64,000 nt of DNA from Geosiphon pyriformis uo1 (GCA_016748015.1 JAAOMT010000003.1:1549365-1613364), one strand, 5' to 3'. Counted from the first letter of the stretch, positions 31,950-63,530 are shown. Notes: generated by a model not told the origin, from the letters alone. Program-made: numbers and translations.

Positions 31950-34600
31950 AACAGTTAATTACATTGTTATATATGAAATAAAATATTTTTCACAAATTTT
32001 ATGAAACTTGCAAAAAAGTTTCAATATTGAATTATTTTAATGAGTCATTTTGAAGTCTTTTTATCTCTTTATGCAACTTTAATAATGTTTTATAATATTT
32101 TAAATTGATAATATTTTTAAGGTCTTGCTGTACAAAATATTGTATTATTAATTATAGAGCATTCCGTGCTTCTTTGTGAATAATTTTTTGACATTTTATG
32201 CTTATTCTTTTTTCACTACTATTCTTTTTAATAATTAAATTCATAATTTTTTGATTAATAAGTAGTTTATCTATGTGTGTTTCTTTGAATAATTGATGTG
32301 TTTACTAATATTTATTACATTTTGCAAGTAAAGCATTTTAATATCTGTTTGCAACTCTTTTATTATTAAAACTATTATTATTCCTAATATTATTGTTATC
32401 ACTGATATTATTGTCATTATTAATATTATTTTTTATATACATAAAACTAAAATATTTTACAATATTTATAATTTATAAATATTTTACATATAATTAATTA
32501 TTTAGTTCTAAATTAATAAATAATATTTATTTAACAAACCAAAAAAACTTATTGTTTTTTATTTATCAAAGCTTTTATCAAATGTTTAATTATTATAAAC
32601 ATACTTTTACATCTGTTTTATTGTTGGTTTTTTTTAAATTTCACTTTATTATTTTGTAAATTTCATATTTTATATATTTTACAATAAATTTATTTTTTTT
32701 ATTATAAACATCCGAAAAATAAGTTTTTTATTTTATTTTAAGCTGTTTAGTAAACCAGTAACTAAGTTATAAATACACTTTATCTAAGTTTTTAAAAAAA
32801 CAAAATAGTTTTTAATATTTATAAAAAGATTTATTTTAATAGTAAAAAAACCAAAAATCAAATTTTTCAATAATAAATTATATTAAACCAAAAAGTTAAC
32901 TAATTTGGTTTTAAATATATTATAAAAAACAATAACTTTTTTTAATTAATAAAAAAAGAATTTTAATGATATTTTTTATTGTTAAAATTAATTTATAAGC
33001 TAAAACAACTTTAAAAGCTTTAAAAACTTGAAATACACAAAATTATATTGTTATAAACCAATAAGCTTTGTATTAATATTAAAAACTTTATAAAAAATAC
33101 TAAAAATGTTAACTTTATTCAAAGAAGTTCAATATTATTTTTACTAACTAATTTTAATTAATAAATTTATAATGTATTCAAAAAGAAGTTTTCTAACTTT
33201 CATTTTATTAGTTTAATTTTTGTAATTAAATAACTTAATAAGTTGATTAAATAAAGTATATATAAAAATATAACTTGTTTTGTTTTTAAAACCAAAAAAA
33301 TATTTAAAATTCAAATATTAAGTAATTCAGTTATAATTTATTTAAATTAGCTTTAACAAACATATTACTATTGCTATTGCTATTATTTAAAAAACATTAT
33401 TGTTTATAAACAGATTAAGATTGAGTATTATAATTAGTGCAGCTGTAAAAAAATTGGTAAAAATATCAAAAACTAAAAAAAGCCAATATTTTATTTTTTT
33501 ATAAAAAAAGAATTAATAACAATAATTTTGGAAAAAACAGTTGCTTTTTTATATCTTTGACTTTTTGAATTATTTAAACAATAATAGATAGAGTTGTTAT
33601 AGAAAAAAGTAGCTTTGTTACCAGTTTGCTATTGGAAATTTTTAACTTTTTGGAATAATAGCAATTACATTAAAACTGGCTTTATTTAATTATTAAAAAA
33701 GAAAAAAACTTTTACTTTAAGTCAAAAAAATGTTATTTTATCTGCCAAAAACTGCTTTGTATTTATATTATTTAAAAAAATGCTGTTTAGCTAAATTAAA
33801 ATTTGAATTTTTGAGAAAAAAGTTTTATTTTTATTTTTATTTTTTTTTGTTTTGGCTGTTATCATAAAAATACAAGAAAAAGTTTTTTTGTATTAATATA
33901 AATTAATTATTAATTATTAAATATATAATTACATATTGAAAAAATAAGTAAGCTCTATTCATATTATATATTTTTTAATTTTTGTGCAAAGTTTTTGTTA
34001 TCATTGTAAATATTAATACTATTTTATTTTGATTTTATAAAATTTATTCATGCAATAGATTTATTATCTTTGATTATTAAAAAGTTGTTTGTTTTTTTGT
34101 AACAACTTTTTTATAATTTTTCTTAAATAGTTAATAGTAATTTGATAAATATATATATAAAATGTTTTTAATTTAATTGACAAGATCAGCTTGAATTTTG
34201 GTCTTTAAACATGATTATTGTAAGTCTTTACTTATTATTTAAAGTGTTTCTGGAAGACATATAAAATATTAATAGTTTAGAAAGTAACATATTAGAATTG
34301 GATGTGTTGAGATAAATGAATATTAACTAAATATCTTAATTTTTTATGTTAAAATTGATTCAAAATATGCATTTAACGTAGCAACAAAATTTTTCATATT
34401 GTTGACATGCTGACATTTAATTTTTTGCAAATTGAATGCAAAGTTTATTGTAATTCTTTTTTTGAATTTATAAAAAGACTTTAAATATATTTTCTTAAAC
34501 ATAATTGTGAATTAACTTGTTAAAATTTCAACAACTTTAGAATAAATTATTGATTTTTAATATATAATAATATGTGGTACAACAAAAAAAATAAAATAAG
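31950..34600. mobile_element. Second hyper-AT decayed TE block
   Basis: Same composition as 5450-14460; 33744-33890 aligns by eye with 12926-13115 (gccaaaaactgctttgtattt vs gccaaagactgctttgtattt; ataaaaatacaagaaaaag vs ataaaaatacaaagaaaaag). Confidence 0.65.
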
Positions 34601-37390: not shown

Positions 37391-38287
37391 TCATCTAATC
37401 AAACAGCTTTTTCTTAAAACTTGAGAATAATTAATTTCCTTTTTCAGCCGCAACACCACCACAATATAAGCCGAAGCATTCTGTAAATTCCATTCTAAAT
37501 CAGGGAACAATCTCACAAGGTTTTCCCCAAGTTCACTTCCAAACAGATACAAGAGTCGGAACCCACACATTTCAAAGTTTTTGAAAATCGATAAATTCTG
37601 CATGGGTGCATCAATTATTATATTCGAACTTCCGGTACGCGAAAATCGATACTTACCTTTACTAAACGCATCCGAAATTAGGAAATTATTCACACGTGGT
37701 GGACTATGGTAAAATTGTATTTGTAAGGTTTTCTGAAGGTTTTGTTGCATCTGACATATCAAACTTTCGAAAGCGGCGAAGAAATCATTTAATTTTTTTG
37801 CTAATTGAGATTCTTGAAAATCTTCAAGCTCTTGCGCCGTCATTTGTCGTGGTAGAGTGACTCCATATTTTAGATTTATTGGTATTTGAAAAAATTCTAA
37901 TTCTGCCGCTAATTCTTGTTGAGTTACGAGAGTTATCGCTGAAGTTTCGCTATCTGATGGCCATAATAGTTGTCCAGTTCGATAAAATTCTAAAATGTGA
38001 TGAAATGCTCGTCCATTACGATCAAAAAAATATTCATTCCCATTTTCCGGGTGTAAGAGACCGTTATTTCGTTTACTGAACATTGTCCCAAGCAGAGTGT
38101 CTGGATAAGCTGTCAAAGTTGATCGAAATGTTTCGTACTATGCAAATATCAAAAAAAGAGAAATGAGCAAAATACTTGAGATTTGAAGGAGAAATATTTC
38201 TTTTTAATACCCCAAGAGCTCCCACAAAATCACCTTGATCCCACCAATATTCAGTACAATTCTTTCATCATTCAAATTTGTCGCCAT
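37391..38287 (-). CDS. BTB/POZ (BTB_2, KCTD/T1-type) protein, ~266 aa; exons 38287-38234 and 38137-37391
   Basis: MATNLNDERIVLNIGGIK | YETFRSTLTAYPDTLLGTMF...EYFFDRNGRAFHHILEFYRTGQL...ELEFFQIP; canonical GT..AG phase-0 intron. Confidence 0.93.
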
Positions 38288-43139: not shown

Positions 43140-43425
43140 TCTGAAGTCAAAATCCCGCTGACATATCTAAGAATGACTACATTTCGCATACCTCAATTTG
43201 CAAATGAAAATTTTGCAAGCTATATTAAGAGTGTTATTTCACGTGGGATAATGACGATTATGCTCCTACACTCCCAGTTCTTAGAAACAAAAAATTTGTA
43301 TTCATTTTGGAATTGTCGAAGAATCACGCAACTGTGTATTTAAGGAAAATCAAAGAAGCTATTAATTTTGGTTTTGTTTGGGTCCGAGAAGACAAGGCTG
43401 GTTTGACGAGAAGCAGATATTTGAA
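43140..43425 (+). pseudogene. Class-3 lipase-like exon fragment
   Basis: LRMTTFRIPQFANENFASYI, (frameshift) DNDDYAPTLP, CLGP match TFGQP..N..FA.Y, NxxDYVPxLP and CxGP of neighbouring genes. Confidence 0.6.
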
Positions 43426-43885: not shown

Positions 43886-45328
43886 ATGGCATCCAAAAGA
43901 AGCACTTATTGGAATATAAAAACTTTTTTAATTGCTTGGATTATTGGATTGATCATATTCAGAATACATGTATATGGTAAAGGGAAGCCTTAAAAATTTA
44001 GTATTATTTTAGTAGTCTGCTAATTATATATTATATATTTAAAATTTTCAAAATAATATTTGAAGAAAGCTTTTCAAGGACTAAATTAAACTTGTTTAAA
44101 GAGAAGAATTCGGCGATAGAACATATTGGCTCGACTGATTTCACCTCTAAAATATATTTCAGCAATGAAGAAAAACAAAATAGCACAATCATCATCCGAT
44201 CACGAAAAGGGCTGGATGGTGTTAAAACGGAATATCCCAATCAGTTTATCGTACGAGACCATTTACCGGAATATGCATGGTGGGCAATGCGATCGTATTG
44301 CCTCGATGGAAATAATTTAGTTGGTCCAGGAGTATACGGTTCGTCATTTTAAAAAGTTTTTAGGTTTATTCATTATTGACTATAAACAAAATTGAATCTT
44401 AATCTTTTGAATTTCAGCCAAAGTTGTTGTGCGAAACTCCAAATTAATTCTCATGGTAAAAGGCGAATCACTTGACAATGAAAACTACTGGGAAAAACGA
44501 GAAAATCAACTCATCGATTATCCAATACTCTCTTCAAAAGCTATTGGAGCAAAAGTCGATAAAATATTTTATAAAAATTTCAAAAAAATACGCAAAGCTG
44601 TGACTAATCTTATTTTAACTGCTCTCCGGAAACATGAGGTCGAGATTATTATAGCTGTTGGACATGGATCAGGTGGAGGTAACATCTTGAATCTTTTTTA
44701 AAGTCACTCACTTTGATACATAGAAAAATTCTGGTGATGTTCTTGTTTCATTATTTTAGTTTATGCAATCTTGCAAATGTTAGAATTAGTCAAATTAAGT
44801 ATGACGGTGCCTTTGAGGGTTTGCACTTTTGGCCAACCACATCTAGCGAATCGCGAGTTTTTTCAACAATTTAATAGAATGGCGACCAATATCAATGAAA
44901 TTTTATTAACTCGAGTGACGAATATGAATGATTATGTCCCAAAGCTTCCTGAAAGTACAATTCGAGACTTTTACGTACAAAGCCCCTCAGAAATTTGGAT
45001 TGAATCTGATGATTGTCAATGTGCTACTGGAAAAGTTTACATATGTCTTGGACCAAAGTTTTTCCAAAATGATGGGTCAGTTATTCTTCAGGAAAATCAG
45101 GTTTAGTTTTTGATGAATTTATTTAATTCAAACGAAAAAATATCCAATTTACAAAATTTTATCGATTTTTAGGATTGCAATGCTCAATTTTCAGAAAAAA
45201 ACTTTGCCCCACATAATGGGCCTTATTTTGACTACATGATGGGGAAATGCTTAGATGTACCACCACCTTGGGATATAAATTTTTGGCAAAAACTGCGCTC
45301 GAAATACTTTAGAAACTGGTATTTATAA
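43886..45328 (+). CDS. Class-3 lipase-like protein A, Gly at nucleophile position (GHGSGG), ~373 aa; exons 43886-43976, 44066-44338, 44418-44678, 44760-45100, 45173-45328
   Basis: All introns GT..AG and frame-preserving; hydrophobic N-terminus; motifs SYC, VKGES, AVGHGSGGVYA, TFGQP, RVTNMNDYVPKLP, EIWI, HNGPYF..MGKC. Confidence 0.9.
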
Positions 45329-46831
45329 ACATTTGATGAGTAATTAACTAATAAAAATAATGTCTTCCATACTCATAATTTCCTAATTTCAAAAGGAAAT
45401 TAATGGAATGATTATATTTTTCAAATAAACAATTTCAAAGTTAAATATTTGAGTAGCTATTCTTCGCGATATTAAAATAGAAATATTTATAACACATGAA
45501 TAAACCTAAAGTAGTATGAGAGTTTAAATATTTTTAATAAAACTAAACTCAAAATTAGTTAGGCACTTAAATTCTTTTTGAACTCTAAACCCAAGGATTC
45601 TTTGTTTGTAACTAATGTTTTGAGAGATAATTGTCTGAAATTTTATTTTTAGTTTCAAATTTAGAACCTCATTGGAAATTTTTGTGAAATTAAAATACCT
45701 TTGCAATGGCAACTGAAATCAGGCCACTCCAATCTCCAATGCATGGAAGGCTAGTCATCTTAACTACAGTGATTTTTCAAAGAGTTAATAGCAGTTTGCT
45801 GCTCTCAAATTCCAGTTTCTGTAGAAAAATGACAGTATACCGCATACTTAATGTTTTAACTTATTAAAATTAAAAATACTTAAGAATTTTTCAAGCCTGG
45901 AATAAGTAAAGTTTCTTCTGTGAGCAACTACATATGATTCACAGCTGACTTTCTTTGTTATTGAAACCTATTAAAGAAACAAAATTCGATCCGATCTGTA
46001 GTCCAAAAATTTTTGTTTTGATCTTGGAAAATATTTTGAGTGGTTAATACTCATTTTATAAAAAAATTTTTTTTTTTTAGCTAGAAATACTCCAAGCTAA
46101 GGTTTTTTTTGCAAGTATTAAATTCGGGAACTTTATGCGAAAATATTCTATAAAAATTTAAATCTTTCATTTTAAAATGCGGGAGGAAAGGCTCAATGCT
46201 TATAATTAAAAGTTTTTATAAATATTTTCGTCAAAATGCTATTTCTGATAAAAATATTTAACATGATTTGATTAAAAGCTATTTTGAAAATAACTCAACT
46301 GGCTCGTTTGAAAAAAAAATTAGGTTTTGTTTTTAAAATATTTTTTGGTGTCACAATTCTTTTAGAAAAAATCGAATTTGGTAAAGAAAATTTATTAGTT
46401 TGAACCAAAGAAAAGAAAAATTTTACCAAACTGAAAATGTTTTGAAATCCTTTGAAATGATAAAAAAAAAATTTTTTCTTTTGATCTTTATCAACTTTCG
46501 AAAGATGAATTGTCATTAGGGAATTCAACGATTATGAAAAATGTTTCTGAACAATTGGTTTTAATTGTCAAACTTTTTCAAATGCTAATTTTTAAAAATA
46601 ACTACATGTAGAATTCTGGTAGCTCGAGAATATCAGAAAATTAATCAAGTCAAATCACTATCAATTTTAAATTATAATTAAAGGACCAATCACAGTAGCA
46701 TTTTATGATACATTCAAGAAACCCAATCATTTTTTTAAAGCGAATATCATCATCAATTCAAAAGCCCTCCTTTATCTTATATATATATATAAGTATCATC
46801 ACATTGATAAAATATATTTCAGCGATGAGAC

Positions 46832-47612
46832 ATGACTTGTAAAAATATAACTTGTGATGATCGCATTGTGCTAAATGTAAGGTAAGAAAGCTTTTCCTCG
46901 AGATTCAATAGCAATTATTTGCTGCGCGAAATATGGTAAATCGAATCAACGTTCTTAGTACGAAACTTTTCGCTTAATATTAACTGCGCGTCCTGACACT
47001 CTCCTTGGGAACATGTTTTCTGAAAGAAATAAAAGCATGCCTAAGCCTACCAAAGGCAATGAATATTTCTTTGATCGTGATGGTCATGTATTTCACTACA
47101 TAATGCAATATTATTGTCTTTTGCAAAGTCATATGGCCCCCTACCCCAAAGTGATTAAAAGACGAGCTCCGATATTTTCAAATTTCTTTTATTAATTCAC
47201 AATCAATCGACAGTCAGGAATTCGAGCTCGCTGAGGTAGTTGATGAATTTGTGTCGGCTTTAGAAAGCCTTATTAAAGGCTATGCGTCATAATTTTCAAA
47301 GTGAAGTAACCCTAAAGTGCTATGAGCGACTTTAGAACCGCCACAGGGTTGACAGGGTCACAAAATCAAGAATAGTTCCACATTTGAAAGATTCGTGCAA
47401 ATTTTAGAAAACTTTGACCTCGCGGCCTATGAAATACTCAAAAGATTAAGCTCAAAGATTATTACCACCTTGAGAAAAAAATTCCAAACGTGGATATCAA
47501 TATTGATTCGAATGAGATGCATACGGGTATGAAATATGCCTTTTTCAGTGTGAGAGCTAGGGATTCATATGATAATGATAGGATCCTTTCTCAAAGCTAT
47601 CTCAAAAATTAG
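46832..47612 (+). pseudogene. BTB/POZ pseudogene, paralogue of 37391-38287
   Basis: Exon 1 MTCKNITCDDRIVLNV lacks GGIK and ends out of phase; same intron position; YETFRLILTARPDTLLGNMF...EYFFDRDGHVFHYIMQYY, then frameshifted DELRYFQI, VDEFVSALESLI, DRILSQSYLKN*. Confidence 0.85.
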
Positions 47613-47884
47613 AACGTAAAATTGCTCTGTTGCTGCCAAACGAACAGCAATTTTAAAAAATCGTGTCCTTAAATTTTTGAATAAACTAAGGTTCCATCGA
47701 AACTATTTCGCTTTTGTTGAATCATTTGATTAGAGACTACAGGAAAGAATCCCAATTGTTAACATTTTTATAAAATTAGAAAATTCCATGAAAAGATTGG
47801 TTTTATCAAATATTTAGGCTTGCTCAATTAACATGAAAATCAATTCAAATTCGGCAGTGTCCAGAAATATAGAAAGTTTAATAT

Positions 47885-49334
47885 TCATAAAATGTCAACC
47901 GTACAAGTTCCCATCATGATACCCATATATGGTCCATCATGTGGTTTAAAATTTCTCGTTTTATATTGATTATTGCACAACTAATTTTCAAAGGCAAAAT
48001 GAAATTTTTTTAAATATTGGTCCATCATAACAAAAAATAAACTTTACAAGGCAAATAGGGGTGATTGCAAAAATACCTGACTTTCTTCAGTAAAAAGAAC
48101 CCCATCATTCATAGTAGTTGGTCCAATACATCCAAAAACTTTACTCTTTGTACAATCACAATCATCATTAGTCTCGATCCAGTATTCTACAAATGGGTGA
48201 TGGTACGGTATAAAATCTAAGGAAGTGTGAACAGGTAACTTTGGAACATAATCGTCCATATTCGTTAGTCGGACCGCATGGAGCCCCTTAATTTCGTTAA
48301 GATACTGGGCAAATTTCTTATCACCCATATGAGGCTGTCCAAAAGTTATTAAAGTGAGAACAATGTTGAAATTTAGCGTGTAGATTAAATCCAAAATTGC
48401 AAAAGTTGCATATACTAGGTTATTGAAAATTGAATCAACGTTAATTGAGCAAAGTTACTTTTCAAAGAAGATGGAAAACTTGATTTAACAGATGGTTCAG
48501 GTAAACTGAGAAAGTGCAGTTACTTACCGCCACCAAGCCCATGACCAACAGCAACAAAATTTCGAGCCTTTCCTCGCAAAGAATTCAAAACCATCTTAGA
48601 CATCTTATCCTGAGTTCTCAGATAGTTTGTATAAAAGAATTTATCCACCTGAGCTCCAACAAACTTGGGATATTTTATAAACTCATTTTGTCTATTTTCC
48701 CAGTCCTCTATCGCTGATTCTCCTTTTACTGTCAGAATGATTTCCGAACCATCAACAAATATTCCAGCTGTAAAAAGCAAAGAGTAAGCAAAGGTTTGCT
48801 TTATTAAAAATATTTAATTTAAAATGTATTTTTTGGCAAATTACCACGTATTTCCTGACCCAGATTTTTTGTTTCAGTTACACAATAAGCTTTCATTGCA
48901 TAAATTGCGTATTTTCTTAGCTCTATTAATTCTAATATGGGTAGAATTTCTTTTTTCCCCAATAGATCTGTTGTTTGACTATCAATTTCGTTAATTGTTC
49001 TTCTCTCCAAAATAAATCTTTTAATCTTTAAAGAATCATGTTTTAAAGTAGAAATTGAAGTGTTGTTGCCGCCCTTTGAAATGGAAGAAGTAACAGACGT
49101 GGTGCTTAAAATGAGTTTGGTATTATTATTTTTTCGAAAACTTTTAAAGATTTTTGATGTGAATAAAATTTCCTGATTTATTTTATGTTGAGAAAGTGGG
49201 TCAGTATTTTTCCAACTAACAAAATTTATTGTTATCTCTGTCAACAGTAAGTTAAGTAATAAATTCACGAAAATCAATATCAGCACGCAAATCAAGGCTA
49301 ATGTTGATGAGTAGAAATTTTGCGATGATAACAT
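47885..49334 (-). CDS. Class-3 lipase-like protein B (GHGLGG), ~387 aa; exons 49334-48845, 48767-48528, 48414-48077, 47980-47885
   Basis: In-frame GT..AG splicing; long N-terminal hydrophobic segment; AYC, VKGES, AVGHGLGGVYA, TFGQP, RLTNMDDYVPKLP, EYWI, HDGPYM..MGTC. Confidence 0.92.
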
Positions 49335-51349
49335 TACTTTTTTGATTTAATAGGTGAAAACGATGTAAAATAAATAGGTTGGGTATTTTATACAATAAAA
49401 AATTTAAGGTATTATTATAACTTTAATTATTGAATGCTAGAAATATGTTACTTTTTAAAGATTGTTATTTTAATAATTAAATAAAGCAAAAGGTAATGTA
49501 ACACGCTGCCAGCATCGATTTTATATATATGGATTGGGACATGCATAATTAAAGGATGATCCTAAACACTCTTTCTGTGTTTTTTTCTTGCATGAGTAGG
49601 CTTTATTTTGATCGATTCGTAAGAATTTAAAACTAGAAACGAAACGAGAAATTTCTCGAGAATCTATTTTTATTTGGTTATTATCTTATCTCCATCAAAT
49701 GTAAACATCTTCTGTCACGCTTAATATCTTTTTTCAGCTAATGATTACCTATTTAGGCTAACGTATTCGTATATTTTTTTTCTTTGAGTGAGGTTATATT
49801 CACAAAAGAAGTCATTTTCCCTTGATGATTAATTTCAGATATTTTTCTCACAATGGGAAAGAAAAATGGTCGGGAGCCTAAAGGCTTTTCATCGTAATAA
49901 CTTCAAAATTCCCAAAATACATCACATCTACGGGTTATGACGATAGATCTCTGTTTCTCGTGCGATTCGACATCAAATTTGGTATCAATCCTGCTTATCC
50001 TGATACTGTATATTTAAAATTTTACATGCACAATGAGGATAATTTTCCTCATGCCAATTTTTTCATCTGTTTACGTCATACTGGGAAAATACACATAAAT
50101 GGCAGTCGCATGTGTTTCGCATATCAAATATCATAGGCTGAGGTCGTGATTTTATAAAATAGGCTTTAAAAAGTTTTGTTTTATATGGAGCGTGCTGCAA
50201 TAAAGCCAGACAAAGTGAATGTCAAGCAATTATGGCTTTGGTTATTGAAAAGGGATTTATCTTTTCGCTGGCTTCTCAGCACTCAGAATATTGCTGTTAT
50301 CCCGGCTGTCATAAAGGAGATATTCGTCTTGAATTACTTTACCTAAGAGCTGGGTATAATGTTGAGCCGTCGAATACGTTCCTCTCCGGTGCCCAATAAG
50401 GAGATCAACCACACCACAAGAGGAAGAGATGCAAAAGCGGCGATGAGCGTTTGCTCTTTTCAGGGCATCCATCATTCTCTCGTCTGACCACTTTCTCCTT
50501 TTCCTCGCAATGCCAATCACACAAGGTACAACCTTGCAAACGAACTCCTTTTAGTTGTGACACCAGAATTGGTTACCCGCGACTCCATTTGAGATGAATG
50601 AATATGGTAAGGAAGGAGATTTTGAATTTTTGAATTTCCCTGACTTCTTTATTCAATTGAAAATCCTTTGTGACCCAGTGTTTTTTGTGGAAACCTTGAG
50701 CATGATATAAAAAGATTATCAGAAAATCATTTCTAATCAGGGGTCAATGAGCTATTTTAATTGGCGAGATTTATATAAACATTTGTGGAGGTCGTTATCT
50801 CGGGTCAACTAGTTTTTTTAAAATCACAGATTATATCTCGGATGTAATCAAATCTCATACCATGTTTGAGAAAAGTTATAATAAAATAAAATATAAAAAA
50901 TCTTTAATTCATAATCTAAATTTTAGTTTTGAATCAAAATAATGAGTATTTTGCATATTTCAAATAAATTGACTAATACTACCTTTTTAGTGGATATATT
51001 TTCGAAAAAGGATACATTCCATTCTTTGTAATACATGATAAAAATTAAATTCAAACAAAAATGTAAATAATTATTTTTATTTAGTGGAGCATTTGAAATT
51101 TCGAACGAAATGTGGTAAAATTTCTAAAAAAGATGCCCAAAACAACAGTTTAAAAATTGGATCAGCTCCGATTCATGTATGTTTCAAAGATTATCATTAA
51201 AAACTGTGTTTTATATTATCTTATCTTGCTGTAATTTATTGGACATATTTCAAGTTCTTATTTTCAAAAAATTATGCTTTCTCAATTTCTTTGTAGAATA
51301 ACAACAAGACTAATAAATATAAAACGAATAAGGTTTATGTAAAGCATTA

Positions 51350-54100
51350 AAATGATTCAAACTATATTAGATTTTTAAGAAAATAACCCAGTTGTTAGGA
51401 AGATTATATTTAATAAAACTATTTATTTTAGCGCTACAAAGAATTTCAGCAATGCAGCTGTATATAATATCAATGATTTTCATTGGATTAATATTTTAAA
51501 AAAATTATAAATTAAATAAAATTTTTATTTTTATTTATATGATTGTAATACTAATTTCTTAAAAACAAGTTTCTTTAACTTTGAATGGTCTAAAAAATTT
51601 GATTCACATAAAATAGCATTATTTTTAAAAAAAATTAATCAGCTTCATATTTAAAGAATTTTAAAACATAACCAAATATTCTAATTTTTTTTTTAAGGAT
51701 TAAATTTCGAAAACTAATTTTAAAAGCTTCAAAGTTTTATGTTTTTAAATAATAAGAAAGCACTAGATAAAAAACACATTTACTATTTATTAAATTACTT
51801 TACAAAATTTTGTGAATTTAAGATATAAGAATATAGTTAGAATATTAATTAAATCAAAGAATTAATTTAATTTAGAACCATTTTATTAATTAAGTTAAAT
51901 ATAATCCATCTGGAATAATGGAAGTGATTTTATTCTTTTATCATTTAACCATTATAAAGGATAGTATCGAGTGAATAATTATGAAAGAAAGGAATTCCTA
52001 TTGAATGTTGAACCTGTATAGTATATGCTTCTATCCAGAACATTGTGAAATTTTTTCAGACCGAATTTTCTATCAGATGTTCTGATTGATATTTCAATTT
52101 TTATTTTTGCTTTGGAGATAATGGCATTTTTTCTAATATTTTGAAAATTGATCAAACATAATTCTGTTTGATTTGCTCAAAGAATTTATCAATCACGTAT
52201 CACGTGTTACTCTGAATTTTCTTGGTCAGATCTTTCAGGAATCGAGTTAATCACTAATAAAACTATCAATTTTAAAACCTTAATAACTTGAGAAAAATTT
52301 ATTTAATTTGAAAATTTGTTCTGATATTATAATAGAACTCAACCTAATATGTCTTTTATCAGGTCCAATTCAAATTATTTATAATTTTGGAAGACTAGAT
52401 ACATTTAAAAATTAGGTAAGATTTCTTTGATGACTTCAAATGTCTTGTACTATAGCACTTTTATAAACTATAAAAAATTAGTGGTTGCTTCTTTTTTACT
52501 CTTCATTTTAGTTTTGATCATAAAAATTACAATATTTTATTCAAAATAATATAATAATTGTTGAAAAAATTTTATAAACTCAAATTAGATATTTTCAACT
52601 TTTTTTTATAAAATATAAAATTTATAATTAATTTTCATTTAATAAATATTCTAGTTAAATCCTAAAAATTTAATCAATAAAATATTAAAACTTTTAAGCT
52701 AAAAATTTTAAATTTTTTAACAAGGAATGCTGAAAACAAAATTATTTAAGTTTCTGTCTAAAAAAGCATTAGTATGCAGCAGAATATTGCTAAGACTATT
52801 AATTTTTCTCATATAAGCTTAAACAATGTTATTTGCAAGTTCAAAAAGAGCTTCAGAAATGAAAGTTACTTTTTTTCAAAATTACTTATCCTGAATTTTT
52901 CTCAATATTTTAACATAATTCTAAAGAGATTATTTTCTTTTACAATTTGTAAGAATTTTTTTTATTTAACCAATGTCATGTGAGACAGCTCATTATCGAT
53001 AATTCTAAAAACTTATTTTTCCAATAATTTAGAAAGAATGCAGAAGCCATATTATAAATTTATATCTGAATCAAATAAAGTTTTGATTTCAAAAAACTTA
53101 AATAAAATTTTTAATCTCTAATTTATATTCATTAAAATATTTTTGAAAAACTAATTTCAACCTGAATTATTAAACATAGCTTATCTTTTAGTTGGTATTT
53201 TTTAGAATGAAAAACATTCAAGATATGTTTTCTGAATATTGTAATAAATTATTTTAAAATTGTCAAAATTAATTTTTTTTCTAAAAACTTATAGTTATTA
53301 TACTAATATAAGTTAGTGAAATTGGAATATTTAAATAATTACTTTGATTCAATAAATTATTGCGGCTGGAACATAGTATCATAATACAAACCAATTAAAT
53401 AAATTAGGTTAAGAAAAGTCCTGATTGCATTTAATCTATTTAAATATTTGGATTGAAACTGCCAGCATAAATTTCTACAGTGACAAAATTTATAAAAAAC
53501 CAGAATACTCCAACCTTTTAATTAATAATAAAAATTTTTCAGATTTGAACTTTAAGTAGAATGTTTAAAGTTTTATTACTAATAAATAGAGGCAAAATTT
53601 TTTCTCTCAAATATTTATTTTATGAAGCATTTGGTCTAAAAATTGCGAAAATATTAATAAGAATCAAAAAATCTTGTTTCATCAAATGTTGAGCATTTAA
53701 TAAAAGATAATAAACTCAAAGAAATTTAATCACTGTTTAAAATAATAGGTAAAATTTATTAGAACTTATATAACGGGGATATTCCTGATAATTTTTTATT
53801 ATTAATGATTTTGTTATTGATTTGACACTATTTCTCGAAATTGGAATATTTCTGTCTCTTAGATTCTACGAGATGAAAATTACACATTTTTATTGTTCTT
53901 TGTTTTATATTTTCGATTAATTTGATTAATTTTATTTAAAAACGATATTATCTATTAGTTACCACTACTATCGTTGATAATTGGGTATTCTAGAATTGAA
54001 CTAATCTTTCTTCATCCAAGGTTTGAAATGGAAATTGACTCAAATTGTAATTTTTGATTAATGTTGCTTAATTTATCAAATAATAAATTTTATTAAAAAG
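51350..54100. mobile_element. Decayed AT-rich element relic, family unassigned
   Basis: CpG-poor, stop-riddled sequence between genes; no diagnostic motif recovered. Confidence 0.35.
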
Positions 54101-54810
54101 TAATCTTAAACAAATAAAGAAATTTCTCGTTGTACATTTGAAGGAAAATTTTGTATGGAATGCATTAATGGGCAACGGGGCATATTTGAAACTCATCCCT
54201 TGAAAGTTTAGCAAATAGACGGTTCTATACCAGTTTCGGCTTCCCATTTATCTAAAAAGAATCGATATAACCCCCATATATGAAACATGGGCCACAAATT
54301 TTAGCTCCCAGGTTTTTCCATAATGAATCAATTGGGCATTTTATGCTCAACAAAATTAAAAATTAATATTTAGTCAAATGTCATATTACCATGATGTGCC
54401 AAATTCCAAGATATCGTGGTTAAATTTTAAACTTATAACATAAAAAAATCTTTACCTATCCGACTATCTCCAGTTTGTAAGTTTTCAAATGAATTTCTGA
54501 AACGATCTTACAAAGAACTTATCGTCACTTGGTTTTTGAGAAAGGGACCTTGATTTTGTTCAAAAATTTATTTTGCTGAAGTGTTTTACATCCAAAAAAA
54601 TTGAAGCTTTAATATTCATCAAAAACTAACTTTTCTTTCTTGAATTAATAAATAATTAGCAAAGAAAATATTCAAATAGAATATTTGTTAACAAATTAAT
54701 TGTCTTAATTAAAATTCACAAACCTAATTGTGAATAAAAATGTAACCTGAAGAAAATTTCTACTAATTGAATTCAATAAAAAATCCATCAACATATCAAA
54801 AAGACTATTT

Positions 54811-56147
54811 TTAGGTATTTCTTTTAATATTTATTTCCTTGGCTTTTGTACTTGATGATATATTAACATTTGGCAAAGGATGATTCGGCTTAACTTGTAT
54901 CGTCTTAATCAAAGAATTTAAGGTCCTGCTTTTATAAAATGCCTGTCGATGAGGAGCTTTTGAATTTTCCGGCTCCTTCGGTTGGAATTCATAGACATCT
55001 CGATGCTCGGGATGGTTTTTATCCAAAATTTCTGAAAACAGATTTTTTAAGTGTTCAGCAGTTGGTCTTTTTCGTGGATCCGCAGCCCAACATTGTTGCA
55101 TTATATTGGAAAAGAATTTTGGAATGTTTTCTTGTATTTTTGGTCGAAGGCCATTACATATTTCTTGAATTAGATTTGCATCATGCTTTTTATGACAAAG
55201 GTATCTTTGTATTGAGCATGCTTCCCATACCAGGATTCCAAAGGAATAAATGTCTGAAAATTTTGATTTATTATGATTATATTTTTATATTTTAAAAACT
55301 TTATCTTATATTTGTAAATTACATACCAGACGCTTGAGTAAATGGCTTCCCTTGTAGAACTTCCGGTGCAATATAAGGAATAATGCCGAACACATCCTTA
55401 CTTTTATTTCGTTCCTTTTCTGTACGACACTGGGCGAACCCAGTAATCCATGCCCAATTAGTTGCCGATAGCATTATATTGCCAGGATGAAGGTCACAAT
55501 GAACCAATCCTTCTCCATGAACACTTTTTAAGCCGTCAATAATTTTGAATAACATAAAAGACGGTAATTTCCAGGCGTAGTCGTTCATTGTTTTGTCCGT
55601 CATGCATGGCATTACTAAAATAAAGTTTCTCGTAATTGGATTCTGGGACAAACCGAAGCATGGTATTATAGCATTTCCACTTAGGCAAGCTGATTTTTCA
55701 ATCTTGATTCATTTTAAAATATTTTCTTTTGAGAAATATGAAAAATATGAAAATACATACTAAAAATAAAAGGACAAAAATACATACCTCATTAAGAATA
55801 GCATCCCCAATTTTACTTGAGTTGAAGATTTCTTTTAAAGAAACCATTTTCTGTATCTCCCCGTTATTCTTACTTTCGTTTGAATAAAACAAAATTATCT
55901 TTTCACCGCACTCCCAATTTCTTACACCTTGCGTGATGAATTGAATTTTTTGTAATTTTTCGAATGGAATCCATTGAAACCAACGACCATTTCGTTTCTT
56001 CAACAGTTTTCTTTGAATTTCTTGGAGAAGGTTATCAATTTGTGGAATTCCACTCTGGTGAATTGGAAAGTCACATGGGGGACATACTGGTTGATTTATT
56101 GGCAAAAGATTTTCGCATTTAGGGCAAATTGAATTGTTTGGAGACAT
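54811..56147 (-). CDS. Tyrosine-kinase-like protein kinase, probable pseudokinase, ~392 aa; exons 56147-55788, 55702-55327, 55253-54811
   Basis: In-frame splicing; N-terminal CxxC-x10-CxxC, QWIPFEKL, VSLK, FGLSQNP, VHCDLHPGNIM, VFGIIPYIAPEVL, SDIYSFGILVWE, MQQCWAADPRKRPTA; DFG position reads GFA. Confidence 0.9.
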
Positions 56148-57844
56148 TTTATCTGAGTTTCTTATCAAAGCTAGTGTTTTTTTTTGAAATTGATTTTCGA
56201 AAATTCGCTGTAAATATTATATACCAAGTTAAACAGAATAGTTGGAAGGGTTTGGATTGTAACAAAAAAAAGATCTCCCAATATGAATACCTTATATGCA
56301 TTTTCCATAAAAATCGTTTTGTTTGAAATAACGTTGTGCCACATTGAACACTAAAGGTGAAGTATTATCAAGTCCACAGAATTCTTTTAATACTAATTAA
56401 GACTAGCAGTTTATTTAATTTCTGGAGATAACTTTCAAAGAAATGTTGGATATATTACGTTCCAAAGAGCTATAATCTTATTCTTAACATTACTACTAAC
56501 CTAATTCGAGGATTTTGGTCAATTTCCATGAAAAGGTTTTCTAGATTTTTTAGCACAGTTCTAAAAGCTGGAAAAGATTATTCTATTCCTTGCTCATGTG
56601 ACTGAGAAAGTTAATCATTTAAAGTCCATCACTCAACCAATTTAAATGAAATGTAATCTGAATGACAATTGGGAACGTGAGCAACATGTCACCGATATCT
56701 TGTTTTAATATCTTAAGATGACAACAATTGAATTGCATTAGAAAAAAATTCAATCCGGGTGGAATACTTGCCTTCTTTAAAATTGAACATAAACTGCGTT
56801 TCAACTGCACAACTTTATTTATTTCAGATTGTTATTATTATTGAATCTGTAAAAACAACAACATTGATCCGCTTCTCTTTTTCATAACTCAAATCAAGTT
56901 TAAGCAATTTTTTAGTTTTAAAAGTTGATGTATCTTTTAAAGAGTTTTTGCCATCCAACATTGTTCATCCATATGACACATAATGGAACAAATTGTAAAC
57001 TGTGGTAAAAGTAGAATTTAAAGAAATATGCCTTATAAGATTTATATAAACTTAAGAATTAGAATAAATAACATTATAAATTCACTGTCAACAATAAGTT
57101 TAAATAAGATATTTTTTATGATATTAAGTTAAATAAATAAATAAATTGAAAATTATATTTCCTAAAAATAAGAAATTTGCATGATAATCATAATTCCTAT
57201 TCAAAGATATTTTTAAAACTAACTTTTAGTTATTGACTTCAACAAATATTTCAAAGTTTTATAACACTTAATTAATGAATTCTAAAGTAATACTCAGTTA
57301 ATATATAAGATACTATTTAAATTAAGGAGTTTATAAAAATGTTATTTTCAAAAAATATCATCCCTTTTGAATAATACTAAAAAAATTTGACTCAACATAA
57401 TTTGAAGTTTTTGAAATACGCTTTTTTCTAAAAATATTATTTTTTATCAAGAAAATCTTCGATTATTTACATTATATATTTTTTAAAAGTGTAAAAAAGA
57501 TATATTATAACTTTTTTGCAAATTATTCCTTTGTTCTTTATTCACAACTTGACAAGAGAATTATCAAAGCTCCTTTAAATTTCCTAAAGTAGAAAAGGTC
57601 TAATTTTTTAGAATTCTTTAAAATATTAAAAAATAATTTAATATGTGAATTTTTATAATATAAAATATAGTTCAAAAGCGGATTAAATGATAATTCTTTC
57701 CGGATTTAGAACATTCCTTATTGGGTAATACTCTTGGTAATCTTAAATGAGATAATTTTTGTTTCTTCTCATTTTAAATTATTATAAAAGAATAGCTATC
57801 TTAACGTCAGTGACATTGTTATGTTGACTTGAAATAATTTAATC

Positions 57845-59167
57845 ATGTTACATAAGGGGGAAATGTTTTACATTTTGAAAATTTTTTATAAATTTCATAT
57901 ATTATTAACAATTTTTTCATTATTTTTACTCTATTCTTATAAAATTTCCAATAAATTTTTTTTTTCAATAATTTCAAAATCAACATCTGAACAAAATTAC
58001 TTTTCAAAAAATTTGAATCAAAATTTATCCAATTCTATTTTATTTCAAAAACGAAATAATTTACCTTTAAATTCAAATGAGGGACGTTTTATTGGCCAGA
58101 ACGCTAAACTTAATTTAACCCCAAATCAACAAGGATATACCGACCTAAAACTTTCTGCTTTCTATGCTAGCACGGCCTATTGTTTCCACAAAAAAACACA
58201 CGAGATTGCTGATGGAGTTTATGGTAAGGTTTAGATTTTTTTCTTCTATTATAAATATGAATATCAATTGTATTATGCCAAAAATATTAACAATTTTTTT
58301 AAGCAAAAGCTCAGATTATTCCAGATGAATTTGGTAAAAAGGTCATTATGGTATCTTTTAAGGCAGATTTTCCTAAAACCTCTGAAGACTGGAAAAACAA
58401 AATATTCAAATTCGATTCAAAATTTGCTGATGTAAATGGTGCAAATTTTGATTCGGAATTTTATGCAAGATATAAAGCTTTCCAAGAGAAATTAATGTCA
58501 AAAATAATACCAGTTTTAAAAGAGGCTGAAGAACTTGGACCTGATATTGTGTCTACTATTCGATTTGTTGGTCATGGAATGGGGGGAGGTTGGTCACAAT
58601 ACTTTTTTAGATATATTATAAAAATATTGAGAAATTCTTTAGTAATTATTTTTTGTTATAGTTTTTGCATATTTAGCGGGATACCATATGTCTTTGCCAT
58701 CAACTAATCCCTTCAAGAATGTGATACATACTTTTGGTCAACCTCGTATTGGAAATCTTCAATCCATACAATCAATGCTTGCTAAAAAATTATCTGTATT
58801 CCGTGTTACGCACATGAACGATTATCTACCTCGTCTTCCAGAAAGTAATGCATTTTTGCATCCTCCATTTGAAATTTGGATTGAATCAGATTGCAATTGT
58901 TCATCTAATAAAGGTATTGACAAGGCTTATCTTTGTTATGGCCCCATTGACACATTAACTTATACTTATACTGAAAGCAATGTAAGCATAAGAGCAAAGT
59001 TTTTTATATTTAATATGCATTTTTTAAATTTTTAACTTATCAAAATTTTCTAACGGTTTATTAAGGAATGCATTAATGCACAACCTCTTAAATCTAAAGT
59101 TGCACATCTGGGTCCTTACTTTCAGCTTATGATGGGAGAATGTCCACACTTAGAGTTTGAAGAATAA
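57845..59167 (+). CDS. Class-3 lipase-like protein C (GHGMGG), ~361 aa; exons 57845-58223, 58304-58588, 58662-58981, 59066-59167
   Basis: In-frame GT..AG splicing; AYC, VSFKAD, FVGHGMGGVFA, TFGQPRIGN, RVTHMNDYLPRLP, EIWI, HLGPYF..MGEC. Confidence 0.92.
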
Positions 59168-59199
59168 GTGTGTATACTTTTAAAATGATCAAAACTCTT

Positions 59200-60850
59200 T
59201 AAAATTTTATAAAAATTAATAATTTTTTTTTCATTAATCAAAATGATTAAATCATTTATCATAAATCACACTTTGTAGTTAAGGAATAATTTGATTCGAT
59301 ATTGGCTTTTCATCATTTATTAAAGTATTCTATTAAATCTTCATATTTTATAATTTCTTTGATAATTCATTGAAAATTTCTTAAATAACTGGAAAACATC
59401 TATATTTATTTTCCCTAGTATGTTAAATTATTCTAAAAACTTTCCAATAAAAATATGCCCATTTAGAAATTTAAAGACTCTGTTTATTAGATTGATATTT
59501 CTTCTGAGCTATTTTTACCAATAATTCTACTATTTTTGAATTGAAATCTATTAAAAATTTATTTTGTTAAGATAAACTTCAAGCATTACATTGTAGCTAA
59601 AATCGAAAAAATCTAATTAAATTTTTTAATAAAAATATTTCAAATTTGTTTTAAAAGGCAAATAATTTTACTGTTCAAGTTAAATTCTCAATATAACAAT
59701 TGAGTTTTTATCAAAATTTTAACGAAAACACACTTTATTTTATTTTATTTTATTTAAACTTGATAATAAAATTTGAATTAAATATATTTATTTTTAACAA
59801 AACTTCAATTGAAATTGTTTTTGAAATTGGAAAATTTTCAGATCAAAACATTGAATTATCCTATATCTTTTTAGCCAATATTTCATAAAGAATTAAAATC
59901 TTTAATATTCGGTTATTTCCCAACTATTTATCAGCTTTACATTATAATTCATTTAAAGTTAAATCCTAAAAAGTTTTTGAGATATATGTTTTATCAAGAT
60001 TTCGAAAATTTTAAATTTTTTGTTTCTTACTAAGAAATTTTCTATTATTTGTAAAAACCATTGAATGTTGAGAATATTATATATTATATCAAAATTCTAA
60101 TGATGCTTTCATCTTTAATTCTGAAAAAATTGTAATTGATTATCCCAATTAAAATTCTGATAGACTTTTGATAGCATTAATTTTTTAAACAGATTTTCCT
60201 GATAGCTGATTTTTGTCAAAAAATCATTCTTATTTAAATTTCCTAAATATTTCAAGTATACATATATATTAAATTATTGAATATAAAATTAGTTATTATT
60301 CTTCGGGCTTACTAATTCATAACATAATGTCAAAAATAAATATTATTTGCAACTTTTTAAATATTTCAATTGCAGAATTTAAAAATTTTCAATATAAAAA
60401 AACCTAATAATCAAAAGTTAAAAGCTTAGGCCTAATTTCAAAAAATAATACAAAATTTTTAACTTAATAAATCTGAATTTTTCACAAACAAATAATTGTT
60501 ATGAATAAATAATTGCTTAAATTGATAATCATGAATTTTTTCAATATATAATATTGCTATTCAATTATCATTTTAGACATTTTTTTATATAAAATAACCT
60601 AATTTTGTAATTTCTCAAATAATTTATTGCTGAGAAATAAAATATAGATTTACATATTTCATTTGATATTGATGAATTAATCTCAAGTTTTGAATCATTA
60701 TAATTTATTTATAATTTTAATTAAATTGATTATTATTTTAACTTAGTTTTTATTATATTAAATTTATATTAATTAGAATATTAAAAAAATTGCTTCTTTT
60801 ATTCCCAAATATTCAGGTATTTAATTTTTCTTCTAATCATGCTTTTTCAT
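59200..60850. mobile_element. Decayed AT-rich element relic between lipase-like genes C and D
   Basis: Composition and CpG loss only; family unassigned. Confidence 0.35.
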
Positions 60851-61461
60851 TTCCTAATTTATGGTGGAACTTAAAGTCGAAAGCTTTTGGTTGAGTTGCA
60901 GGTTTTAGACAAATTTTAATTTTTATAAATTATTAATATAAAAGTTTTGATTTGGTTGCCATTGGTATTTGGAATGGTATGATTGCATTTTTACTTTCAC
61001 AGGAATTGGTGTATTTTGCGGGTATACATATTAATAAAAATAGATTGTAAAATCTCATGAATTTCATGATAAATTTCGAAAATGACTTCGAATTCATCCT
61101 ATCGTTATTTGCAAACAAAGAATGAATTTATTGGCTTGCAATTTACTATCTATGAAAATATTTGGCAGCTATACATTTTAAACACTTAACAGTTTATCCG
61201 GTTAATATAGAGTTACTTAATACTTTATCTTAGAGAATTATATTGCATTGGGAAATATTAAATGTTGAGATAGCCAAAATTTGAATGATCTTCAAATTCC
61301 ATACTGGGTCATTGGCCATTCGAAAAAAGATCCCTTTTTTGAGGTAAAAGTTATAAAAAGAAGGATTGAAAATTTCAAGTCAATAAATAACAGTACTCGA
61401 ATAATCAACAGGATTTTCTCTAAATGGATATTGAAATATATATTTTTTCCGTAAGAAAGCC

Positions 61462-62918
61462 ATGATTCTCAATCACTTTAGGGGAAAAAAGAAAGGGTTC
61501 TTTACAAGACAAATTATATTTCTTTTCATCCTTATTCTAGCTACTCTCGAAATTCTTATCAATAAAGTTGAAAAATATTACTTAATTGGAGCAAAATTAG
61601 CTGAAAATAGATTAAATTGGTCAAATAATCAAGACTTTTCCTATTTGTGGCCAGAAACACTCCAAAATAATAGAACTTTGAGTAAACGTGAATTAATAGC
61701 AGCTGGCCCCTCAAGAGGTTTTGGTGGCAGATCTAAAAAAATTCCTCCTAAAACACTAGTTACAGATCCGGAGATAATAAATTTATTAAAAACGATGGCT
61801 TTCTGGGCAAATATGCCGTATTGCACTCCGAACCGGAAGGTTGCAAAAGATTCCCTGGGAGTAATTTGTAAGGAACATCTCTTTTTCAAGTTTGTAATTA
61901 TTTGATTCAAGGAAAAAAATTTTAAAGCCTAAACTTTAATATTAAAAACTTTTTTTTGCCATGAAAAGGTGATATTTCACTACAAACAATAGAAAAAAAG
62001 GAAGGAATAGTAATATATTTCCGTGGTTAGTTTTGTAAAACTTCTCATTGAATTCACTATAATTCCAGCTTCAATATTTTTTTCTTCAAATTAAGGACCT
62101 GAACTTACTAGAAAGCAATGGAATGATAGAAAATTTAATTTAGACTCGGATCGTAAAAAAGATTCTTGGCCGGTAGATTCTCAATGGAATGAAGTGACCG
62201 ACGGTGCCGTGGAAGGAGTGTTAAATGGAATTAAATACTATAGTTCCGAATTTACTGGCGATACGGTGTTCACATATTTTACAGGCCATGGAATAGGAGG
62301 GGGTAATGTTGTATTTAAATTTGTGCAAATATAATAAAGTAAAATTGATTTTTATGTTTTTTTGGATTATAGTATATGCTCAATATATAGCTAATATACT
62401 TGCAACGATGTCGGAACGCAAGAGAGTTGGTAAACATCTCGATGGTAAAAATATGGAAATCACAGTTGTTACATTTGGACAACCAAGAGCGGGAAACTTT
62501 CAATACGCAGAGCGTGTAAATGCCCTCATGAGGTCGAAATTTCTCAAAATCTATCGCGTGACTCACTCAAATGATCATGTGCCACAGCGACCATATTTAA
62601 AATCGACTTCAAAGCCTTGGTTCCATACCGATCGAGAATATTGGATTTCATTGAATTGTAATTGTTCGCAAAAAAAAGCGCCTGAATATGAACTTTTTGA
62701 ATGTCCAGGATATTCTAAAGCTGATTCTGAAAAATACGGAGAAAATAAGGTAATTCCCTCAAGTTATTTTTTTTCGAAAGTTTGACTTTATATTTATTTT
62801 ATGATAACTTTAATAGGAATGTAATCTTGGTACTGACGGTGCAAGTAACACAGCTAATTATGGTCCATACTTTGGAATCACTTTTGGAAAATGCGATGGG
62901 TTTTTTCCATTGAATTAG
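61462..62918 (+). CDS. Class-3 lipase-like protein D (GHGIGG; catalytic His also replaced by Asn), ~382 aa; exons 61462-61867, 61969-62025, 62096-62302, 62373-62749, 62817-62918
   Basis: In-frame GT..AG splicing; PYC, IYFRGP, FTGHGIGGVYA, TFGQPRAGN, RVTHSNDHVPQRP, EYWI, ANYGPYF..FGKC. Confidence 0.9.
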
Positions 62919-63159
62919 TTGGTCTTAAAATCTAATTAGGCAAATTACTAATAATAAGATAATAACTCATATAAGTAGATTTTTAAATATAATAAATACA
63001 AGCTAGTTGCAACACTCCTGTAATTTACTATTAAATAAAAGCTAAATTAATTTCGCATTTGAATAATTAATTATTTCTCTATAATCATTATGATTAAAAC
63101 TTTTTTTAATACCTATTATAGAGAAGTTTTATTGAAAAAACTTAATACTTTAACACATA

Positions 63160-63530
63160 GTCTAAAATACTATCTCATAATTGCAAGTTTTAAGGGTAAC
63201 TTTGATCACGATAGTAGGCAAGCCTTTCTTAAGTTGATGCGACCAATTGTTGCTCATATCAATGTCTTTTATGAAGTTTATTCGATTGGATATGGAGCTG
63301 GTGCGGGATAAGTGATATTACCGATAGTTTGCTTTTATAATAAAAATTCCTCTCAATCAATCTTATCTGCTATCTGGCTTTCAATGTTAGCTTACGCGGT
63401 TTTAACAGCACTAGCCCTCCCAGAAACTATCCAAATCCCCCGACCTGAAATTCCCAACGCTTTCACATTTGAAATCTCTAAGATATTTTGCAAAGCACGC
63501 AGGAAACTTAATAAATATTTAGCAAATAGA
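63160..63530 (+). pseudogene. Truncated class-3 lipase-like pseudogene (IGYGAGA)
   Basis: IIASFKGN...SIGYGAGA, broken donor GATAAGT at 63307 at the family's conserved intron position, acceptor then AYAVLTAL...AFTF; N-terminal exon and C-terminus not found. Confidence 0.65.

Follow-up and report, generated by a model that had tools for sequence, protein, structure and literature searches.

We describe a family of lipase-shaped proteins in Geosiphon pyriformis, starting from four of its genes (g1 to g4) that lie in a 64,000-nucleotide stretch of the genome of G. pyriformis uo1 (GCA_016748015.1, JAAOMT010000003.1:1549365-1613364; hereafter the window, with positions counted from its first letter). 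In all four genes the nucleophile elbow, which reads GHSLGG in Thermomyces lipase, carries glycine instead of the serine. Gene models were obtained by chaining open frames through canonical GT-AG introns within the window, and these spliced models were used for translation checks, local alignment to profile hidden Markov models (HMMs), trees and estimates of dN/dS, the ratio of nonsynonymous to synonymous substitution rates (omega). Database searches were queried with exon references (alignments A1 and A2) or with database proteins (P0004 and others).

All four frames are open, the GT-AG introns sit at homologous positions and a phase-1 intron falls directly after the elbow GG in each gene (Table 1). 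Every exon of g1-g4 matched the Pfam family Lipase_3 (PF01764), with scores of up to 41.6 bits against a cut-off of 22, and PF01764 is also present in the precomputed annotation of P0004, the GenBank model of g1. Pairwise identity among the four proteins is just 27-40%. A reading made earlier from the sequence alone (the sequence-only reading) had proposed four divergent, intact and correctly spliced class-3 lipase-like genes with GHG elbows; the four complete models agree with it, and the elbows lie in frame at exactly the coordinates it had given.

Table 1. Lipase-like genes and other features of the window.
Feature	Position	Strand	Details
g1	43886..45328	+	373 aa, 5 exons: 43886-43976, 44066-44338, 44418-44678, 44760-45100, 45173-45328
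g1 layout			N-terminal hydrophobic segment, lipase fold, aromatic/basic C-terminal tail
g1 elbow GHGSGG	44660..44677	+	GGA CAT GGA TCA GGT GGA; Gly codon GGA
g2	47885..49334	-	387 aa, 4 exons: 49334-48845, 48767-48528, 48414-48077, 47980-47885
g2 elbow GHGLGG	48529..48546	-	Gly codon GGG
g3	57845..59167	+	361 aa, 4 exons: 57845-58223, 58304-58588, 58662-58981, 59066-59167
g3 elbow GHGMGG	58570..58587	+	Gly codon GGA
g4	61462..62918	+	382 aa, 5 exons: 61462-61867, 61969-62025, 62096-62302, 62373-62749, 62817-62918
g4 elbow GHGIGG	62284..62301	+	Gly codon GGA
Putative decayed elbow-exon relic	63063..63308	+	ends IGYGAGA then stop; AYAVLTALAL remnant in next open reading frame (ORF), 63312-63530
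Sel1-repeat ORF	2154-3053	+	118 bits
BTB/POZ ORF	37391-38116	-	
Split protein-kinase gene	54811-56168	-	zinc-ribbon-like N-terminal exon

The oxyanion Ser/Thr is gone as well: the FRG-equivalent motif and its next residue read VKGE in g1 and g2, FKAD in g3 and FRGP in g4, so that E, E, D and P stand where the sequence-only reading had likewise seen neither Ser nor Thr. All of g1-g4 keep TFGQP, the ND(Y/H)(V/L)P Asp and six conserved Cys, again as that reading had it. The triad Asp is present in all four genes; the triad His is found in g1-g3 and is replaced by Asn in g4 (TANYGPYF), a change that had gone unmentioned. In GenBank, g1 corresponds to G9A89_023421 (P0004; 98% identity over residues 60-373, with a different 5' exon), g2 to G9A89_023423 (P0006; 99.5% identity, a partial model) and g3 to G9A89_023426 (P0009; 93% identity), and the nearest database protein to g4 is P0008, a same-contig paralogue with 69% identity. 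The expectation that automatic annotation would call these genes lipases did not hold, the entries for g1, g2 and g3 being named 'hypothetical protein'.

Glycine at the nucleophile position of a class-3 lipase fold

A profile built from 61 family members matches the solved lipases of Thermomyces, Rhizopus and Rhizomucor as well as feruloyl esterase A (E 5e-32 to 1e-27). In the alignment, the profile segment 'rfvGHGiGGvyA' pairs with 'vFTGHSLGGALA', which places the Gly on the nucleophile Ser146 of Thermomyces lipase. The AlphaFold2 model of P0004 has a mean predicted local distance difference test score (pLDDT) of 83 and a predicted template modelling score (pTM) of 0.82. Its top Foldseek matches are 6QPP, 1TIC, 1TGL, 3TGL, 1UWC and 1TIB, all with probability 1.0; the best is the Rhizomucor lipase-propeptide complex 6QPP, and the target-normalised TM-score reaches 0.78 (1TGL, 3TGL). 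The matched structures are the lipases of the same three genera together with feruloyl esterase A. We conclude that g1-g4 are class-3-lipase-fold proteins without the nucleophile Ser and without the oxyanion Ser/Thr. With the fold retained and an essential catalytic residue gone, they are probably non-catalytic alpha/beta-hydrolase homologues, and the earlier statement that Gly replaces the catalytic Ser in every intact copy is borne out by the alignment with the Thermomyces GHSLGG.

Each of the four proteins begins with a short basic N-terminus followed by a hydrophobic segment of 13-21 residues (Kyte-Doolittle 2.4-3.4), a variable linker and the lipase domain. The segment of g2 (21 residues) resembles a signal anchor, and two further paralogues, P0151 and P0152, likewise carry a basic N-terminus with a hydrophobic segment. 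Such N-termini suggest that the family as a whole may enter the secretory pathway via an N-terminal signal or anchor, and an oxidising compartment fits because six Cys are conserved.

The ends of g1 differ in some respects from those of related models. P0004 (347 aa) begins in an upstream ORF (43173-43343, MTTFRIPQF...) and is without the hydrophobic N-terminus; exon 1 of our g1 model (43886-43976, MASKRSTYWNIKTFLIAWIIGLIIF) fits the architecture of its closest full-length paralogues P0151 and P0152 (each 373 aa). The 5' ends of many GenBank models in the lipase-like family may be wrongly modelled. At the other end, g1 is the only one of g1-g4 whose C-terminal tail (45230-45325 in the last exon, PPPWDINFWQKLRSKYFRNWYL) is enriched in aromatic and basic residues; the P0004 model predicts a helix there (H329-340), which might be amphipathic and bind membranes.

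A large family apparently confined to Geosiphon pyriformis

The 128.3-Mb A+T-rich assembly (792 contigs) was scanned with a degenerate DNA pattern for G-H-G-x-G-G (GGNCAYGGNNNNGGNGG), giving 329 sites against 30 in the reversed control, an excess that is not due to chance. GHSxGG sites numbered 63 (control 11): the form with an AGY codon accounts for 41 (control 5) and the form with a TCN codon for 22 (control 6). Of the 34 GHG pattern sites in the fetched loci, 32 fall in frame within a match to the family HMM, and the remaining two are found directly upstream of one. These counts suggest a family of roughly 300 Gly copies and about 50 Ser-bearing ones. A six-frame Pfam search of the genome returned 783 first-look candidates and 171 scored matches.

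With a profile of the exon that bears TFGQP, a search of 1.84 billion representative proteins gave 1284 matches at E <= 1e-3 and 206 at E <= 1e-10. From the best 150 of the 1284 representatives, together with P0151, P0152 and g1-g4, we obtained a set of 159 alignable lipase domains. The nucleophile position is occupied by Gly in 123 of these, by Ser in 20 and by another residue in 16 (Ala 6, Arg 4, Asp 2, Phe 2, Cys 1, Tyr 1). One subclade has GFG or GYG instead of GHG, and in a GHRL(A/G)G clade the triad His is also changed, to Tyr. When the source of 30 proteins was looked up, all 27 family members came from Geosiphon and were named 'hypothetical protein', and the three proteins outside the family (from a fly, Coemansia and an amoeba) all read GHSLGG. 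A further 23 proteins of the best 150 match a small Geosiphon DNA sample at >=95% identity. As an outside control, metagenome contigs with TFGQPRxGN (n = 120 loci) showed GHS upstream in 86 cases and GHG in none, and a search of metagenome contigs with exon alignment A1 found no relative. The protein-cluster atlas returned just generic Lipase_3 clusters, bacterial and viral. Homologue searches with P0004, with the 61-sequence alignment A3 and with the Ser-type P0034 gave 5-6 Geosiphon proteins each, from a word index that does not span so divergent a family and is silent on other fungi. The GHG family is apparently specific to Geosiphon pyriformis and is derived from class-3 lipases of the Rhizomucor/Thermomyces type.

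Several GenBank proteins (P0001, P0002, P0005, P0010, P0013 and others, 540-1290 aa) contain two or three complete lipase-like domains each. Most likely the gene predictor has fused tandem neighbours, and these are not true multi-domain proteins.

Repeated switching between serine and glycine

To follow the history of the nucleophile, we built a tree of the 159 domains from an alignment without the nucleophile column. Copies with Ser and copies with Gly are interspersed on this tree: the Ser label needs 12 changes, and the strongly supported branches alone force at least 5. A tree grouping all Gly copies is 357 log-likelihood (lnL) units worse (approximately unbiased (AU) test, p = 1.4e-8; a 56-row subset, with rows chosen after the first tree had been seen). 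The switch can be seen directly in two copies on one contig (C371) that are separated by a dS of only 0.18, one reading TTT GTG GGA CAT GGT CTT GGT GGA and the other TTT GTG GGA CAT AGT CTT GGT GGA. Codon usage was tabulated in 60 family genes (48 Gly, 7 Ser). All Ser codons are AGY, in a small Ser sample of 7 genes, and the 48 Gly codons comprise 22 GGT, 19 GGA, 4 GGC and 3 GGG, of which the GGY codons (26/48) are one transition from AGY.

Given the intermixed tree, the AGT/GGT pair and the AGY/GGY codon usage, we conclude that the Ser/Gly state has switched many times in the course of tandem and dispersed duplication at the DNA level, each time by a single AGY<->GGY transition, whichever way it ran. 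The sequence-only reading had assumed an ancestral loss of Ser; this history is rejected by the intermixing, the AU test and the close pair. It had also placed the Gly codons two steps from AGY-Ser, which is correct for the GGA and GGG codons of g1-g4 and fails family-wide with the many GGY codons. The window genes themselves sit in old Gly lineages, and the clade of g3 is composed of 15 Gly, 9 Ser and 2 other domains.

Within the expanded family, the Ser-type members have terminal branches about as long as those of the Gly type, and most are also without the FRG-Ser/Thr. Some of these GHS copies may not be ordinary lipases either.

Conservation, selection and expression

Among the 123 Gly-class domains, the triad Asp is invariant (123/123), the triad His is present in 88 of the 103 aligned (85%), with Asn in 14, and the His preceding the elbow Gly is kept in 111. 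The six Cys, which probably form three disulfides, are 96-99% conserved, and so are TFGQPR.G, R.T..D.VP and E.WI, despite an identity of ~30% between proteins. The residue after FRG is mostly P, E or K and is Ser in just 5 of the 123. Variability is highest in the lid and the next helix (3.3 bits, compared with 1.7 at the elbow); even so, 87 of the 123 domains keep a Trp in alignment with the lid Trp of Thermomyces lipase.

Omega was estimated by the Nei-Gojobori method on the two main exons, with bootstrap 95% intervals. In five older pairs (dS 0.17-0.83) it ranges from 0.32 to 0.50, and the interval lies below 1 in four of the five (upper bounds 0.59-0.84); the fifth is a Gly/Ser pair with an interval of 0.26-1.09. 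The family is under moderate purifying selection and is maintained as functional genes, in line with the earlier proposal that the GHG copies are under selection. Two GHGLGG copies about 25 kb apart, L033 (G000:C371:296000-299500) and L034 (G000:C371:318000-327999), are identical over 141 codons (dN = dS = 0), reflecting either a very recent segmental duplication or assembly redundancy.

RNA-derived contigs of a public run (X1, 2019) that are identical to the window skip 44338|44418 in g1 (intron 44339-44417, GT..AG) and 48845|48767 in g2 (intron 48768-48844). Both skipped stretches are predicted introns, and therefore g1 and g2 are transcribed and spliced as modelled.

Other features of the window

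Downstream of g4 lies a putative decayed elbow exon, which the sequence-only reading had taken for a pseudogene reading GYGAGA. A colinear match to positions 77-151 of the family HMM, ending on the motif, and the AYAVLTALAL remnant in the next frame speak for this identification; the match is weak (6 bits) and the relic has no Pfam match, so that the claim is weakly supported. Sel1-repeat, BTB/POZ and kinase genes are interspersed with the lipase-like genes (Table 1), and the Sel1-repeat, BTB and protein-kinase families are known to be expanded in Glomeromycotina (PMC9453076). Two intergenic stretches, 6001-14000 and 32001-34000, are extremely A+T-rich (G+C 12-15%) and are probably degenerate repeats. 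The published Geosiphon pyriformis genome comprises 129 Mb in 795 scaffolds with 29% G+C and 64% repeats (PMC9453076).

Relation to known lipases and non-catalytic homologues

With the lipases of Rhizomucor miehei, Rhizopus and Thermomyces lanuginosus and with Aspergillus feruloyl esterase A (same fold, Foldseek probability 1.0; profile E about 1e-31), the GHG family has in common the geometry of elbow and helix, TFGQPR.GN, the ND.VP Asp, in most copies the H.GPYFG His, the position of the lid with its Trp, a pro-like extension at the N-terminus and, putatively, a signal or anchor. It differs from them in the Gly that replaces the nucleophile Ser, in the loss of the oxyanion Ser/Thr after FRG, in the absence of a loop of ~30 residues after the first Cys that Thermomyces lipase has, and in a Cys pattern of its own (YC, CxC, C, CN, C). 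It also has hundreds of paralogues, whereas most fungi have a handful of class-3 lipases.

Canonical class-3 lipases are encoded in the same genome (e.g. loci L004, L005, L007-L009). They have the same intron directly after the elbow and share TYGQPR.GN and the D..PH.P Asp motif with the GHG family; unlike that family, they keep FRGT and GHSLGG with AGY Ser codons, and they do not align with its Cys-rich C-terminal half. Since these lipases keep FRGT, GHSLGG and Asp, the loss of nucleophile and oxyanion residues is a property of the expanded family and not of all Geosiphon lipases.

Reuse of such folds without catalysis has precedents. In plants, EDS1, PAD4 and SAG101 use a Lipase_3-fold domain as a non-enzymatic scaffold. 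They give weaker sequence and fold matches and are not closely related to the GHG family (E about 1e-9 against 1e-31), from which they also differ in being intracellular, fused to an EP domain and members of small families; EDS1 and PAD4 retain Ser-Asp-His. Another residue, typically Gly, takes the place of the nucleophile Ser in neuroligins and other cholinesterase-like adhesion molecules and in the Drosophila yolk proteins, which are lipase homologues; these proteins keep the fold and reuse it for extracellular binding. They belong to other alpha/beta-hydrolase subfamilies (carboxylesterase type B and pancreatic lipase type), form small animal families and reflect a single ancient loss each, in contrast to the recurrent AGY<->GGY switching in Geosiphon. 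A class-3 lipase without its nucleophile can still hold a fatty acid, as in the S146A mutant of Thermomyces lipase with oleic acid (1GT6, by its PDB entry title). It serves as the working model for what a GHG protein might do. That mutant was made in the laboratory, has Ala where the family has Gly and retains its oxyanion residue, and it says nothing direct on GHG proteins.

A description of the family was not found in the searchable literature, a search that does not take in the Geosiphon genome paper, and the supplement of PMC9453076 is without a Lipase_3 row. Non-catalytic alpha/beta-hydrolase homologues were already known. New here are the origin from class-3 fungal lipases, how large the family is and the way in which its nucleophile has switched, recurrently and by single-nucleotide changes.

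Discussion

On balance, we lean towards the view that the GHG proteins are non-hydrolytic proteins of the secretory pathway that bind acyl lipids, either at the cell surface or at the symbiotic interface. Without a nucleophile an acyl-enzyme could not form, and for this reason the proteins would not act as lipases. They would enter the secretory pathway through the N-terminal signal or anchor, bind acyl lipids without hydrolysing them, and could hold, sort or pass on lipids freed by the few active FRGT/GHSLGG paralogues, while the diversified lid would tune the ligand of each copy. We favour acyl lipids as ligands because the groove-and-lid architecture and the lid Trp persist, and because the sequenced arbuscular mycorrhizal (AM) fungi cannot make their own lipids (PMC9453076). 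The oleic acid held by the nucleophile-less Thermomyces lipase points the same way. Geosiphon is reported, in work of Malar and colleagues in 2021, to share the lipid dependence of its relatives.

Several observations weigh against this view or limit its reach. A hydrophobic N-terminus is found in only 19 of 60 GenBank family models, so that the earlier description of the proteins as secreted or anchored agrees with the N-termini of g1-g4 and with the six Cys and is only partly carried over to the family; poor 5' models may explain the shortfall. The RNA evidence consists of one junction each of g1 and g2. The specificity for Geosiphon is provisional, being drawn from ranked matches and samples. 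That the Asp is never lost and the His is kept in 85% could point to residual or different chemistry instead of a role in structure only, and ~300 copies diverging as fast as g1-g4 look more like a recognition or effector family than one for transport. Finally, omega is 0.93-0.97 in the two youngest pairs (dS 0.06 and 0.14), with wide intervals, and some copies may be drifting.

The proteins might be non-catalytic and yet carry no lipid, forming instead a diversified surface or secreted family for recognition, adhesion, decoy or effector functions, a possibility that we regard as real though rather unlikely. They could be decoys that soak up partner-made lipase inhibitors, or modules that meet Nostoc or other microbes via the variable lid face. 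About 300 copies, fast divergence even within the window, the concentration of variability in the lid and following helix, an overall omega of about 0.5, with values of about 1 for the youngest pairs, and the setting amid other expanded Glomeromycotina families (Sel1, BTB, kinase) would all suit such a role. So would the presence of EDS1, PAD4 and SAG101 among the fold matches, and both SAG101 and the Ser-to-Gly cholinesterase-like adhesion proteins are precedents; a pure protein-protein scaffold, however, would have no need of the lid Trp and the Asp/His that are retained. Asp and His, with the His before the elbow Gly, are also what would be expected if the proteins were still enzymes, whose His-Asp pair by the Gly cavity activates water or another nucleophile or supports a non-hydrolytic reaction, as in some alpha/beta-hydrolase-fold enzymes. 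The clade of g1 has a conserved Ser after the Gly (GHGSGG in g1, P0151, P0152, P0026 and P0020), and 'migrated' catalytic residues are reported for some pseudoenzymes in a review (PMC10211241). We nevertheless hold residual catalysis to be improbable: the oxyanion Ser/Thr is lost too, Asn replaces the His in g4 and in 14 domains of the Gly class, among them those of P0151 and P0152, which read GHGSGG, and a site that tolerates Ala, Arg, Asp, Cys, Tyr and Phe looks like a released one. At position +1 of a nucleophile elbow, the residue faces away from the active site, and a migrated nucleophile at the +1 Ser of GHGSGG is unlikely.

It is very improbable that the family is mostly a by-product of runaway duplication in a repeat-rich genome, its copies being dying enzymes without a function of their own. 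The near-neutral omega of the two young pairs, the decayed relic within the window, the reported repeat content of 64% (PMC9453076) and the identical loci L033 and L034 are in keeping with such a process. Against it stand the intact frames and conserved splice sites of g1-g4, the 96-100% conservation of the six Cys and structural motifs at only ~30% identity, an omega significantly below 1 in older pairs and the spliced transcripts of g1 and g2. Returning to acyl-lipid binding, a bolder and distinctly unlikely extension is that Geosiphon turned a secreted lipase into a pseudoenzyme system of ~300 members, with an active site that toggles between Ser (AGY) and Gly (GGY) and so yields matched cutters and non-cutting binders. 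Acting together, the two kinds would capture, sort or sense acyl lipids that come from the partner at the symbiotic interface. In this fungus-cyanobacterium endosymbiosis, they would be the lineage's own way of coping with fatty-acid auxotrophy.

To our knowledge, the family is among the largest pseudoenzyme expansions known in any alpha/beta-hydrolase family, and as a natural example of a catalytic residue that single-nucleotide changes have switched repeatedly, it is unusually clean. For annotation, Pfam Lipase_3 tallies in the Geosiphon genome would overstate its lipolytic capacity roughly five-fold. Lipid uptake on the fungal side is poorly understood in the partner-dependent Glomeromycotina, and an expressed and maintained family of lipase-shaped proteins that would not hydrolyse provides concrete candidates for proteins that capture or recognise lipids where Geosiphon meets Nostoc.

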